Source: Geosiphon pyriformis uo1
Lineage: Eukaryota > Fungi > Glomeromycota
Assembly: GCA_016748015.1 (NCBI GenBank)
Contig: JAAOMT010000176.1
Span: forward strand, 1 to 64,000
Direction of reading: 5' to 3'
Length of the DNA stretch: 64,000 nucleotides
Shown here: positions 56,235 through 63,324 of the stretch, one piece after another
Position numbering within the stretch: the stretch's first letter is position 1
How the letters are laid out: every line of letters starts with the position of its first letter
Notes under the pieces: generated by a model
The model's database searches: none
Told to the model about the DNA's origin: nothing
What the model saw: the letters and a program-made list of their open reading frames with translations, nothing else
Made by a program: the position numbers and the translations under genes

Positions 56235-58285
56235 ATGAATTTACCCTCTTTTGACACCCTTGAAGTGTTATCTGAGTTCAAACCCAATTCTCAAACGAAT
56301 ATCTCTCCTAATTCTTCGGAATTCATTCAGGACGAGGATCAAACTCGGGACAAAAATAATGAAGGGCAACGTGTCGCTCAACCTCCTGATAAAGATATTT
56401 CTGTTGATGATATAGAGAAATCTCGGGTTTCTAACCCCTCCAAAAGGTTACACAGTTTGACGAATGCCAAAAATTGGGTTCAGGAAAATGGAATAGATTC
56501 CGGGGTAAATTGTGGAAAAAAGGCTCCCACTTTCAGAGACAGAATCTCTGAATATGGGGCTAATTTGAAAAGGTTTTTGGGATTTGTAGGCCCTGGATAT
56601 TGTAAGTAATTCATTATGAAACCTATTCATCGTGTTGTTTGGATCTTCCATTAGCTTAATTCATGGACTGTAAGATGAATTCATTTTTCATAATATCCCT
56701 ACTTATAACAGTGATTGCCGTCGGGTATCTTGATCCCGGTAATTGGGCAACAGATTTATCAGGTAAGTCTCATATATTGTCACGAAAAAGTGCTTCAATA
56801 ATTTCAATGCAACCAACCCTTTATTGCTATTAAAACATTGTATAGGAGGTGCAAAATTTGGTTATTCCCTCCTGTTTATTATTCTTTGCTCAAATTTCAT
56901 GGCGATGTTGTTGCAAGGCCTTGCAATAAAGTTAGGAGTTGTGTCTAATATGGGTAATATTCTCGGGAACTTTTTCTTTTTTATTTGTAGAAGGATTTAG
57001 CTCTAATATCCTATCTAAACTTTTTTTAGATCTTGCACAAGCATGCCGTCATGTTTGTCCAAGATGGGCAAATATAGTCTTATATGTTTTTTGTGAAATT
57101 GCCATTATCATGTGTGATCTTGCTGAAGTCATTGGTAGTGCCATTGCTCTGAAACTCTTATTCAACATTCCTCTACCATGGGGAGTTGCTATGACTGGGC
57201 TTGATATCATGATCTTGCTGCTTTTATACCGTGATAACAGTTTGAAATCTGCACGAATACTGGAATCCCTCGTTATGTTCCTCGTTGTATCTGTCGGCCT
57301 TTGCTTTATGCTTGAATTGGTTTATTCAAAGCCGGACTCGGCTTCTGTTTTAAAAGGCTATCTGCCAAGTTCTGGAATATTTACAAACGGCGGTCAATTA
57401 TACATAGCAATAGGGATCATCGGAGCCACCGTGATGCCTCATAATCTTTATCTACACTCGCATCTGGTAAAGGTTCGAAAACAACGCGACGAGATCAGTT
57501 TAGAGGCTGAAACGAATAATATGCTCGAAACTGGCAATTCAAATCATTCCCCAAAACAACTTTTTGAAAACTTAATTCGTCGAACAATAAAATTGTCAAC
57601 TTGGGATTCCACAATTGCCTTGACATTCGCTCTTTTTGTAAATTCTGCGATTCTAATCGTCTCCGCAGCCAATTTTTTTTACAATTCCCAAGTAGATCCA
57701 GATAAAGTAGGTCTTTTTGACGCTTATGAGCTGCTCAGCCACTATCTCGGTTCCTTGGCCGGATTCCTTTTCGCTTTGGCATTACTAATTGCCGGGCAAA
57801 GTTCCACCCTTACGGCCACAATGGCAGGACAAGTTGTAATGGAGGGCTTCCTCGGGCTAAAACTTCGTCCGTGGTTAAGGAGACTTATTACACGCAGTTT
57901 GGCTATAATACCGGCATTGGTAATTGCAATCGTGAAGGGATCCGATGGATTGGATGGGATGTTGATCGCGAGTCAAGTTGTTCTCAGTTTACAGTTACCG
58001 TTCGCGGTGGTTCCTTTGGTATACCTTACCAGCTCTAAAAAGATAATGCGAATTAATTCTCGGGACTTTCAACGCAGACAGCACGACGGGAACATCCACG
58101 CGGAGGGGGAAAAAGACCAACTACCTTCGGAACCCGAATCCTCAGAACCACAGCCACATTACATTGACTTTTCTAATCCCAAGTGGCTTATAATAATTTC
58201 CAGTGTTGTAAGCTTTATTATTATCGGTTTAGATTTGTTTCTCGTGGTTGCCACTATTAAAGACGCTATCAATGGCGAGTTGTAG
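56235..58285 (+). CDS. NRAMP-family divalent metal (Mn/Fe) transporter, SMF-like (4 exons)
   Basis: GFVGPG, IAVGYLDPGNWATD, CEIAI..CDLAEVIGSAIAL, GIIGATVMPHNLYLHS, AGQSSTLTATMAGQVVMEGF and SQVVLSLQLPFA. Confidence 0.96.
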
Positions 58286-58809
58286 AGTTCTGGGCAACCT
58301 TTCTGTAGTTCTTTTCATTCTCACCCTATGGCTGGTTGGTCAGTCAGAAATATTGAATTTTCAATCGGCTGACTTCAATTACTCGACAATATTGGACCCT
58401 CTAAAAAACACTAATTCAGTTTTACAATTGTATAAATATATAATGTTTAATTTACATCTAAAATTGAGATCAATGTATGATTATTAGGACTGTTTGGTCA
58501 TCCTCAAATTTTAATTACATTCTCGGAAAAACAGGCATCAGTTTATTGATAATTACATGTAATCAATGAGTGGATTATTGAAATCGATAATAAATCATTA
58601 AGACATGATAACAGATAAATCTATTTAAGAATAAAGTATTAACAGATTCTTCCTCTAAAGTTGGGTGGGAGCCAATATATTAATACACGGACGGGATTGA
58701 ACTGTTGGACGTAAAAAGATCATCAGGTTGATAAGAAATACATAAATGAAAAGAAACATTCAAAAAGATTAATGCTTGAGATTATATATCAAACCTTATA
58801 TTGTACAAA

Positions 58810-60748
58810 TCATTCGGCTTCAATATCCTTCTTTTTGTCACCTTCCAGCAAGGCCTGTCGATTTTTCTCGGCCCTCTCCTGTTTTTCTCGCAATTTTTCT
58901 AATGCCTCGGTAGTTGCAACATCGGATAAGCGCCGTTGTTCTTCGGCGACTTGTTTGGCTCGGGCCACATCGGCAGCAGCTTTCTTTACTCGATTAGCCT
59001 CAGCTTGCTAAAGGTGCATCAAGTTAAATAGATGGGAGAATTAAAACTGAAAAGGCGGAGATTAAATTATCTTATTGAACCTTTCTCTTTTCTTCTGCAG
59101 CGGCAAGTTTGGCATCTATTGATCCTTGTTCCACCCTTTTATGATGAAGATAAATAAAAAATAAAAAATTTTTAATTTAAGAAAGTCAACGCATGTGACG
59201 CGTCGACAATTTAACAATGTTAGTTGTCTAGATTCAATTCATTATCATTGGCAATAATTTTTATGTGTGTGTGTGTATGTGTGCGTTTGTATGATTTTGC
59301 TCGACCGTGACCTTTTCTAAAAATAGATGAAAAGGAGTGGGTTGAAAAGAATTTCAAAGAGTGAATTCTTACGATTTGCGATTGTTTCCCTCAACGCCAT
59401 TCTTTCTGGGACTCTGAGGCTTTTCAAGTTCGAGCTGTGCCAAACGATATTTTTCGGCTTTATCAAGCTTTTCACGAGACTTTTCGAGTGTTTGCTCGGC
59501 AGCCGCGTCGGATTGTCTACGAACTCGTTCCCCTACTTTTTTAGCACGTGCTACTTCAGTAGCAGCTTTTAGAACACGTTCGACCTCTGCTTGCTGTGAT
59601 ATGGAAAGATGACCAAGAGTGTAGGATGAACAAGAGATTGAGGTTATATCGAGAAAAGGGAACTTAAAGACCTAGTGCATTACATCAAAAGTCTAGCTTC
59701 ACAAAAGTTACCTTTCTTTTGTTTTCAGCAGCAAAAAGCTTTGCCTCAATTTCTTCTTGACAAAGTCTTTTGTTCCGATTAAACCCAGGTGAGATAGATG
59801 TTTAGCAATCAAGCAAATGAATAGCAAGCAAGCAAGCAAGACAAAAATCACATCGAATCAGAAGCAAAACAAAGCGAAGCGATAGGCAGCAAAAAAAACA
59901 TAATATCCAAGAAAATTTAAATCAAGTTTGAAGGTAACTACGGTCAAGCAAATGCATACAAACGCGCACATACACACACATACACACACAATGAATCATC
60001 AGCCAGGCTAGATAAAGTGGTACCCAAAATAACAAAGTCAATCGAAATAAAACCATCAACGTGCAAACGAAATTGAAACGACTTACGCTGGATCGGAAAG
60101 ACGATGTTGTTCCTCATATACCTCTCTAGCGTGCTGAATTTCTAATGTAGCTTTTTTTACTCGTTCAGCTTCAACTTGCTATTCGATGAAAATCAATAAT
60201 GTGATTCGTGACGAAAGTCACGAAAAATCATGCAAGTAATTTTAAATATTGTGTTTACCTTTCTTTTTTCTTCCGCAGCGGCAAGTTTCAAGTCCAATTC
60301 TTCTTGGGTAAGACTAATATTTTATATGGCAAAGGGTGGTTTTTAGAAAAAAGGCCAAAAATATTGATTAAAAAAAGCGTCGCGTAAAATATGAGAATAA
60401 ACCGACGCGTTTTTCTAAAATTGAGATAAACCCCACTTTTTCATCAAAATATATATTAGTATTTAGCTTCATGCGAGAAACCTCTTGAAAACCGTATTTA
60501 TCATAGACGCGTGCAAATAACAATAGCTCAAGTAAAACTCCAGTCTTTTGAACCGTGTTCAATTTTCTTTTTTGCCTAAACCCCACCTAAGGTAGTAAAA
60601 ACGCGACTAGAAAAAATTCGTCGCGAGCTTACCCTTTCTCTTTTTCTTCGGCAAACCTCTTTAAAATATGTTCTGGTGTAGGTGCGTCCGGGTTCTTTTT
60701 AATATCGACTTCAAACGCGACAGCTGGTTTGTTCGGGCTTTCGCTCAT
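58810..60748 (-). CDS. Stathmin-like protein, 263 aa, 7 exons (60748-60633, 60313-60259, 60178-60087, 59766-59712, 59593-59373, 59135-59081, 59007-58810)
   Basis: All introns GT-AG and the exons join into one 792-nt frame. N-terminal AVAFEVDI...PTP, then three LxQEE(L/I)xxKLxAAE(E/N)KRKQxExxRV repeats resembling stathmin AFELIL and [24 protein letters not shown]. Confidence 0.78.
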
Positions 60749-61029
60749 AGTTTCTTAGAGTAGTTGGGTATTTTGGTAATGAAATTCTTAATGATACGTA
60801 AAAAACGGTTGGGAAAGAGTTTAGGAAGAGAACATACTTGATCTAAAGTGCTAAACTTGATGTATATGCATTATTCGTAGGGGTACCTACAGCTGTACAA
60901 CAAAAAGGTCTAACGTTTCTAAGAACATTGGGAATTTGGGCAAAATTACATGTTTGATGCAAAGTTAATGTATAAGGTCACATGGCTTTAAATAATTTTA
61001 AAAAATAGACGAAAAGTATCAGGAGACCG

Positions 61030-61102
61030 GCCTTCTTGGCTCAGTTGGCAGAGCGTCCGCCTAGTAAGCGGAAGGTCACTAGTTCGATTCTGGTAGAAGG
61101 CA
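61030..61102 (+). tRNA. tRNA-Thr(AGT)
   Basis: Acceptor GCCTTCT/AGAAGGC+A, anticodon arm TCCGC-CTAGTAA-GCGGA, GTTCGATT T-loop. Confidence 0.93.
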
Positions 61103-61245: not shown

Positions 61246-62947
61246 ATGAAACAATCAAACAAATTGGAAACGTGGGGAAATGAAAATACAATGAATCTGA
61301 ACAATATATTATTTCAAAACATCCAAGCCTCGCCATATTTCAAGCAACTTTAGTAAGAGTGTTACTTTTTTGATTTTCCCTTTGAAGCCAGATCGCTCTA
61401 ACAAAGATTGCTTTCTTTTATTATAACAGTGAACTGAAAACTTATCACGAAGTTATTGATGAAATATATAACGAAGGTAAGACGAGGAATATTAAGTTCT
61501 TTTTGCTATTTCGCTTGAGAAAGATAATTATGTCTTGAATTAATTTGGGATTATTTATATTCTGTAGTATCGTCCCTTGGTAGGTAAAAGAGATGTATAA
61601 TTATCCTTCAATAAATTTCTTAAATTTTCATTTTGATAATTAGATTTTAATCCTTATTTTCAACTCTGATTTAGAGCCTTTTCTCAAGGGAACAACAGCC
61701 TCCACGGCATTTTGCTTACTTTACAAATTGTGGACTTTGCGATTGACCATTAAACAAGTCTCTGGCTTGATTGATCACCCCGATTCGCCGTATGTATTAG
61801 TAACTATCTGCCTGGAAATTTTTTAAAGTTATTTCTACATTTAAAACATTGCTATTTCCTAATAGGCATATACGTGCTCTCGGATTTCTTTATCTTCGCT
61901 ATGTCTGTAAACCTGCCGATTTATGGGAATGGTTCGAGGATTACTTAGATGATGAAGAGGATCTCCAAATTCAGGCAGGTCCCAGGCCTGTCACAATGTA
62001 TGTATGTTCTATGAAGTACTCTTGCGTACTCCGACTTTTTAATCGTGAGTTTGTCTATAGTTGCGTGTGCATATTTTCTATTATTCTTTCTGGAAAAATC
62101 TTTGCATTTATGTACTCAGTTTCTATACTGCATAAAATCTAAACGCTTAATATAGTACAATCGGAAGAATGTGTCGTCAGTTATTGACCGAAACAAAATG
62201 GCTAGGCACCTTCTTGCCACGAATTCCTGTGCCGATTGCGCGTGATATTGAACTAAAATTGAAAGAAAAATTGCAACCCCCACCGCCACCTCCTAGGTAA
62301 GCATTATATGATATGCGGCATATTATTTTTCTCGTTATGTTATTTTTTGTCTGCCATCAGATTATGCCCTGGTACCTCCTTTTATAAATTATTATCGACT
62401 GGATTGTAAAAGTGATGAGCATTCTAGGAATGAGGTAGAAAACCAAAAAAAGCTCAACCTTTTCGTTTTTACAATACCTGTCCCAAGGTTCTTTTATTAT
62501 TAGTATTGAATAATTTACATTTTCACAAATTTAAATTAATTCAGGAGGGAATCACCTATATATGACCTGGAACCTAGAATAATCGCTGACAGTGGTACCC
62601 CATCTAGACATGGCGATGATGAGGGAGATTATCGTCGTAGTCGTACCCGTAGTAGGAGTCCCGATGGATCTTCTAGATCACGTAGACATCGTGATAATGA
62701 TCGCAACCATCGGGAATATAGAAGAGACCGAGATAGCGAGCGCGATTATGGCCGTCGACGAAGCCGAACCCCAGATCGTGATCGTTCTAGAAGACATAGA
62801 GGTTCTGGTCATGATAAAAGAGATAGAGAACATGAAAGACGTGAAACTCATGAATACGATCGTAAGCACGAGGATCAAGATAGAAAGTCAAGACGCTCTG
62901 ATGATAAGGGAAATGGTTGGCAACAAAGTCGAAGTCCAAGACACTAG
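61246..62947 (+). CDS. PRPF38B: Pre-mRNA splicing factor 38B-like (Prp38 domain plus RS/RD-rich tail), multi-exon
   Basis: WGNENTMNLNNILFQNIQASPYFK, ELKTYHEVIDEIY, STAFCLLYKLWTLRLT, DSPHIRALGFLYLRY, TFLPRIPVPI and an RS-rich C-terminus. Confidence 0.93.
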
Positions 62948-63252
62948 ATAAGAGAAAGTCAGAAATTAATAATTGATCTTGGGGTATATCTTTGAGGAAT
63001 TGTATTTTTTTTTAGAATAACAGAATTAACAAATTCTTTGTGACGGGCCAAACCTAATATCAGAGGCATTAAAGATTTCAAGGTGATATATCATTCGGTT
63101 TTATTTGAAATTAGGCTTAAAATAAATAATTGCCTTCATAACAAGGAAAAATTCATGTGGAAATATTTTAATTACGGAGGTTTTTGATAGTTTTGCTAAT
63201 TTTACATTTTAATTTAAATAATAAATATGCACCTTCATTATAAGTTATGTCA

Positions 63253-63324
63253 TCTCGGTTAGTATAGTGGTGAGTATCCCCGCCTGTCACGCGGGAGACC
63301 GGGGTTCAATTCCCCGACCGAGAG
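63253..63324 (+). tRNA. tRNA-Asp(GTC)
   Basis: Acceptor TCTCGGT/ACCGAGA+G, anticodon arm CCCGC-CTGTCAC-GCGGG, GGTTCAATT. Confidence 0.95.

Follow-up and report, generated by a model that had tools for sequence, protein, structure and literature searches.

A stathmin-like gene of Geosiphon pyriformis with a skipped and probably circularised internal repeat module

Introduction

Stathmin-like domains cap alpha-tubulin with an N-terminal hairpin and hold two tubulin dimers in a curved state along the helix that follows (PMC7491153). In Drosophila, the stathmin gene stai includes or skips a cassette exon, exon 6, and the resulting isoforms bind tubulin at 'high and variable stoichiometries' (Lachkar 2010, as quoted in PMC3694009). 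Outside the animals, the accessible text of Deng et al. 2024 includes fungal stathmins from InterPro in its tree with the species unnamed (PMC11238091); these could include the Geosiphon protein described below. That protein resembles STMND1, the choanoflagellate stathmins and these fungal sequences in being a non-vertebrate PF00836 protein.

That skipped exons can also be back-spliced is known from the lariat-route circles of S. pombe (PMC4479058) and from circDS-1 of Talaromyces (PMC11928065). In C. elegans, reverse-complementary matches between introns (RCMs) promote skipping as well as back-splicing, and in the zip-2 RCM circRNA the skipped exons are back-spliced and both flanking introns are complementary (PMC8330042). 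Intronic inverted repeats have been called rare in lower eukaryotes, where the lariat route operates (PMC4479058). The Geosiphon locus shares the combination of skipping and back-splicing with the zip-2, S. pombe and Talaromyces circles, and the complementary flanking introns with zip-2; it differs from all three in that skipping deletes an entire protein repeat module in frame.

Results

The gene lies on the minus strand of the window, by which we mean the whole 64,000-nt stretch of DNA that was analysed. Seven GT-AG exons between 60748 and 58810 were joined by script into 792 nt, encoding 263 aa and a stop codon. The gene consists of a short cap exon followed by three duplicated two-exon modules, A, B and C, all on the minus strand. 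The coding part of exon 1 (60633..60748, aa 1-38) carries SPNK, the FEVDI cap-strand motif and the TP linker. Module A (49 aa, one repeat) is opened by exon 2 (60259..60313, 55 nt) and closed by exon 3 (60087..60178, 92 nt). Module B (92 aa) is opened by exon 4 (59712..59766, 55 nt) and closed by exon 5 (59373..59593, 221 nt), which carries RRQS and SPRK. Module C is opened by exon 6 (59081..59135, 55 nt) and closed by the coding part of exon 7 (58810..59007), with RRLS and a TGA stop. Of the features listed in the first-pass annotation, the N-terminal motif, all three helical repeats and the words RRLS, RRQS, SPRK and SPNK were recovered in the joined 263-aa sequence. In the 5' UTR, RNA coverage reaches 60835 and an in-frame stop stands three codons ahead of the ATG. 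A 93-nt GT-AG intron of the 3' UTR (58702..58794, minus strand) lies 15 nt past the stop and is spliced in an RNA contig; the first-pass annotation does not list it. The acceptors of exons 4 and 6 (59767-59769 and 59136-59138) are AAG and not YAG, and RNA joins confirm both.

The opening exons 2, 4 and 6 form a repeat family: each is 55 nt long and entered in phase 2, and they are 64-69% identical. Modules B and C have 59% amino acid identity with saturated synonymous sites (pS 0.78, pN 0.26). Judged from these substitution figures, module B is an old in-frame duplicate that is still under protein constraint. Since it was long translated under selection after the duplication, a form that includes it would exist or have existed until recently.

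The stathmin gene is single-copy in the 128-Mb Geosiphon pyriformis assembly. It is flanked by a convergent, intron-containing Nramp metal-transporter gene (56235-58285, plus strand; PF01566, E 2e-96) and by a tRNA-Thr(AGT) gene (61030-61102, plus strand). Farther out are a spliced PRP38-family splicing-factor gene (about 61290-62950, plus strand), divergent from the stathmin gene, and a tRNA-Asp(GTC) gene (63253-63324, plus strand). tRNA was the sole match of the Rfam search. Between 54000 and 55600 the window is extremely AT-rich (7-18% GC) and shows self-inverted similarity; this stretch may be a repeat in decay.

With exon 5 as query we retrieved KAG9302739.1, a 305-aa model of the same gene from Geosiphon pyriformis (Glomeromycota, Archaeosporales). 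The source, related to the mycorrhizal fungi, is thus the early-diverging coenocytic fungus that the first-pass annotation had supposed. Its description of the gene as hidden does not hold, because NCBI already stores this model with a precomputed PF00836 match. The model itself is mis-built, with two intron-derived inserts (residues 89-104 and 123-148) that the RNA contigs do not support. We rejected both, the 16-aa and the 26-aa insert: the RNA splices intron 4 at 118 nt, and the other insert derives from the repeat arm of intron 3. The RNA contigs thus correct the public 305-aa gene model.

Pfam and PDB matches were obtained with this stored 305-aa protein and its parts. A match to the Pfam Stathmin profile, proposed at the outset as a check, was found for KAG9302739.1 (PF00836, 45.3 bits against a gathering score of 24.7, E 1e-11). 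Residues 1-88 (exons 1-3) alone scored 29.8 bits and matched no further Pfam family at E<=10, exons 6-7 alone (residues 222-305) scored 27.2 bits, and the cap region contributes about 5 bits to the PF00836 score. In the PDB search with residues 1-88 the best 12 matches were stathmin-4 or stathmin chains, at E values of only 0.056-0.47, with the cap strand and the helix aligned. Language-model features (atlas) led to Stathmin clusters at 0.90-0.91. Neither exon-by-exon searches of Pfam and PDB nor a six-frame scan of the genome for PF00836 produced a match, because the exons are too short. Matches to gp41 and DUF4023 were short and were discarded as chance.

The order of residues along the helix also resembles that of the vertebrate proteins. 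The motif K-x3-AE-x2-R recurs at spacings of 49 and 51 in a 171-aa form described below and at 49, 51, 41 and 51 in the 263-aa form; the 51-residue step lies within modules B and C, and the step of 49 leads from module A to the next module. The two repeats of RB3 are likewise offset by 51 in the PDB alignments. With the stathmin-like domain of STMN1 and RB3 (PF00836; T2R complex) the Geosiphon protein shares the FEV-I cap strand, the proline linker and the EE..KL.AAEE.RK helix as well as this repeat spacing, and it is a small soluble protein without a lipid motif; over residues 37-80 it is identical to RB3 at 18 of 44 positions. It differs in its first repeat step of 49, which contains a proline, and in its extra partial or duplicated repeats. 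Profile score, PDB ranking and 51-residue spacing together uphold the proposal of a stathmin-like protein, and the gene is very probably a stathmin homologue.

The capping hairpin that had been proposed was recovered in part. Its second strand aligns with SFEVIL of RB3, and the first strand is unmatched: in contrast to STMN1 and RB3 the PF00836 match begins at position 15, leaving profile positions 1-14 without a counterpart, and the Phe has only 11 residues ahead of it. A single-sequence AlphaFold2 model of residues 1-88 has one long helix (residues 42-83, pLDDT 83-96) without a free hairpin, and structure searches with this lone-helix model returned nothing specific.

The suggested switch by phosphorylation is weakened. 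At the positions of stathmin S16 and S63 the Geosiphon protein has Pro8 and Gln58, neither of them serine as in STMN1 and RB3, and the linker has only Thr24-Pro25. The conserved inhibitory serines of STMN1-4 (16, 25, 38 and 63) are not retained as a set. RRLS, RRQS and SPRK are located away from the stathmin serine sites, and two of the four candidate sites originally named, RRQS and SPRK, fall within exon 5, which the RNA skips. The protein begins MSESP behind the in-frame stop, and in this it is unlike STMND1, having neither the MGCGPSQ/MGCxxS lipidation motif nor the N-terminal extension.

Homologue searches returned only KAG9302739.1 itself, two metagenome scans were empty, and a 50%-cluster search with exon 5 gave KAG9302739.1 plus one unrelated repeat protein. 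The tools used are length-limited and weak on charged helices, and these empty results therefore do not demonstrate absence from other fungi. Our literature search found no paper on stathmin in Rhizophagus or a chytrid and no characterised fungal stathmin. The novelty claimed for a fungal stathmin is nevertheless reduced by Deng et al. 2024, whose accessible text already takes in fungal PF00836 sequences (PMC11238091).

RNA evidence came from the assembled contigs of one public run, which the tool marked as 'probably DNA'. One contig, of 652 nt, starts at 60835 and comprises exons 1, 2, 3, 6 and 7 with the 3'-UTR intron removed; the donor of exon 3 is spliced to exon 6, so that 951 nt are skipped. 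The reading frame of this transcript continues across the skip and encodes 171 aa, comprising two complete repeats and part of a third. Introns 1, 2, 4 and 6 are exactly confirmed by RNA contigs, and the splice sites bordering introns 3 and 5 are in use. The two joins required for the 263-aa product, exon 3 to exon 4 and exon 5 to exon 6, were absent from the contigs of this single run. The seven-exon gene structure first put forward therefore stands for its exons and these four introns, and the product supported is the 171-aa protein; the three-repeat multivalent form that had been envisaged loses its middle module in the RNA contigs. As assemblers drop rarer joins, the 263-aa form is unconfirmed and not excluded.

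The skipped exons were found in a contig of their own. This 306-nt contig holds exons 4 and 5 only, with intron 4 spliced out, as 276 nt plus 30 nt of identical ends. In it the donor of exon 5 (59373) connects backwards to the acceptor of exon 4 (59766) with zero microhomology, a junction that the window DNA lacks. The contig is broken in the middle of exon 5, the pattern expected when a 31-mer assembler outputs an isolated cycle of 276 nt. When we simulated a k=31 graph, the skipped transcript plus a circle yielded an isolated 306-nt cycle, and the skipped transcript plus the full-length transcript yielded none; the 652-nt match in this simulation was fixed by construction and is not evidence. 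Mean contig depth was 168 for the 652-nt and 40 for the 306-nt contig, a poor measure that serves as a hint only. The frame through the circle has no stop and no in-frame ATG; it is open because the exon phases are symmetric, and hence it is no evidence of translation. We consider it likely that the 276-nt exon 4-5 RNA is a true circle. Intronic RNA was found solely as a low-depth contig covering 59787-60081, most of intron 3, which may be lariat, pre-mRNA or error. This contig has one G>A difference at 59948, within the intron-3 arm of the inverted repeat described below, which would turn a C-G pair into U-G on the transcript.

An inverted repeat brackets precisely exons 4 and 5; neither it nor the back-splice features in the first-pass annotation. 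Its arms, 45 nt each on the minus strand, lie in intron 3 (59940..59984), 174 nt ahead of the exon 4 acceptor, and in intron 5 (59264..59308), 64 nt past the exon 5 donor, and they are 89% complementary. Half of the repeat is a TG/CA microsatellite and the other half is unique. Across the 128-Mb assembly the arm matched only its partner, in a search that skips simple repeats, and the remaining nearby inverted repeats inspected in the window were AT-rich or simple repeats. When the 951-nt skipped stretch is folded, the stem forms in the MFE structure as well as in the centroid (z -3.8). The duplex between introns 3 and 5 has a predicted energy of -115 kcal/mol against -69 +/- 6 for shuffles; for the repeat, the core duplex comes to -65 kcal/mol and the unique half to -28 kcal/mol. 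Introns 1 and 3 likewise reach -103 kcal/mol, via many short stems.

Discussion

We propose that pairing between the arms in introns 3 and 5 places exon 4, intron 4 and exon 5 in a loop. Such looping would favour both the exon 3 to exon 6 skip and the exon 5 to exon 4 back-splice that yields the 276-nt circular RNA; this causal role of the inverted repeat is what we infer from its position. The lariat and intron-pairing routes are not exclusive, and both could act at exons 4-5. The 171-aa protein would be stathmin-sized and, with its two complete repeats plus part of a third, probably binds about two tubulin dimers, as vertebrate stathmin does. Where pairing fails, the 263-aa form would be made, with five repeat motifs and the additional RRQS and SPRK, and could bind more dimers. 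Given that the module B cassette is symmetric, in frame and under constraint, this inclusion form is probably minor or conditional and of higher valence, and the choice of splicing could set the number of tubulin dimers bound. We regard the whole of this model, an expressed single-copy stathmin gene with a pairing-driven skip and circle of module B and a resulting control of valence, as on balance probable.

For the protein itself, homology makes tubulin binding probable, and tubulin genes are present in the Geosiphon genome. Most likely it would be a soluble, mostly unfolded tubulin sequesterer whose long helix runs along dimers arranged head to tail and whose FEVDI strand caps alpha-tubulin. 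We take Geosiphon to be a fungus without a flagellum, and a cilium role is therefore excluded for its stathmin. Like Drosophila stai (PMC3694009), it would be a single gene whose cassette is included or skipped. Unlike that of stai, the Geosiphon cassette consists of two exons duplicated within the gene, lies between the arms of an inverted repeat and turns up as back-spliced RNA, and the multiplication of repeats is probably independent of stai.

A bolder extension appears doubtful to us, namely an intron-pairing switch between a 171-aa two-dimer form and a 263-aa form for up to four dimers, with an abundant 276-nt circle that is perhaps read endlessly into a poly-module tubulin sponge. Translation of the circle is its weakest step, given the lack of an in-frame ATG.

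Among other explanations, the one that fares best concerns the origin of the gene: it would be no orthologue of animal stathmins and would instead derive from the N-terminal helix region of the fungal IQ-TCP11 family, set free and multiplied, and may bind tubulin weakly or have another partner. The genome has an IQ-motif plus Tcp11 gene (PF05794, E 5e-80; contig C604, about 190120-193330, plus strand) whose V-I-D-V...P-x-H-L-x-K-R lead-in is similar to that of the stathmin gene. Module C resembles the N-terminus of this TCP11 protein (33% identity over 67 aa, pairwise E 2e-5), and it is possible, judging by sequence, that this N-terminus is a second, diverged stathmin-like domain. Its helix agrees with the SLD+TCP11 architecture in the accessible text of Deng et al., where SLD+TCP11 proteins occur in red algae (PMC11238091), and the absence of the S16 and S63 sites and of the first cap strand would fit the same origin. 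Against it, the TCP11 N-terminus scores just 8.8 bits on PF00836 compared with 27-45 bits for the stathmin gene, which, unlike the SLD + IQ + TCP11 proteins, stands alone without an IQ or TCP11 domain; common ancestry with a stathmin-like domain (SLD) would in any case leave tubulin binding possible. We therefore hold this origin to be unlikely as a replacement for stathmin homology, and it is partly compatible with the model of a stathmin gene controlled by intron pairing.

Three alternatives bear on the exon 5 to exon 4 join. Trans-splicing of paired pre-mRNAs (exon repetition) could have placed it in a linear RNA; 276 nt are in frame, so this would yield stathmins with additional copies of module B. 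The arms are able to pair between molecules, the RNA library may be poly(A)-selected, the same junctions can be common to circles and trans-spliced RNAs (PMC5042038), and after pruning a simulated graph yields identical contigs. Yet no contig connects exons 4-5 with exon 3 or exon 6, and the cycle is broken mid-exon and not at a branch point, which leaves trans-splicing improbable beside a circle. It is still less probable that the back-splice is a chimera of reverse transcription or PCR and that only the skipping is biological. Template switching often mimics non-collinear joins, canonical sites included (PMC5042038), and exons 4 and 6 are paralogues; however, these two exons diverge at their very first base and share no more than 8 nt, the join falls at an exact donor and acceptor with zero letters in common, and the exon 5 to exon 4 product made an entire separate contig.

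We give slightly less credence again to genomic tandem copies of exons 4-5 that were collapsed in the assembly, so that the join would be ordinary splicing between copies. The gene did grow through module duplication, and after pruning the simulated graph would look identical, but the assembly has a single copy, the contig carries no variant letters, so that the copies would have to be identical, the entry and exit joins are absent, and the flanking inverted repeat is left unexplained. Least probable of all is a generic charged helix, a coiled coil or single alpha helix matched to stathmin by composition. The protein is indeed rich in E, K, A and R, and the fold searches gave stathmin no support, but with residues 1-88 no Pfam family other than Stathmin reaches E<=10, stathmin chains fill the top 12 PDB ranks, and the 51-residue motif spacing and cap strand depend on residue order.

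The reading we prefer thus remains a stathmin gene in which paired introns would drive both the skipping and the circularisation of one module. This skip-plus-back-splice arrangement of a fungal stathmin is unreported. For a circRNA of an arbuscular-mycorrhizal-type fungus itself our literature search found none, the papers retrieved being plant-side by their titles and abstracts, and the locus offers a clean candidate for skipping driven by an inverted repeat together with a circular RNA in such a lineage. The resemblance between module C and the TCP11 protein hints that stand-alone stathmins and TCP11-linked helices are of common origin. If the long form is real, it would be a parallel, reached by a separate route, to the variable-stoichiometry stathmin of Drosophila. 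The expressed Geosiphon gene is a concrete candidate for the first tubulin-sequestration biochemistry in the coenocytic Glomeromycota.
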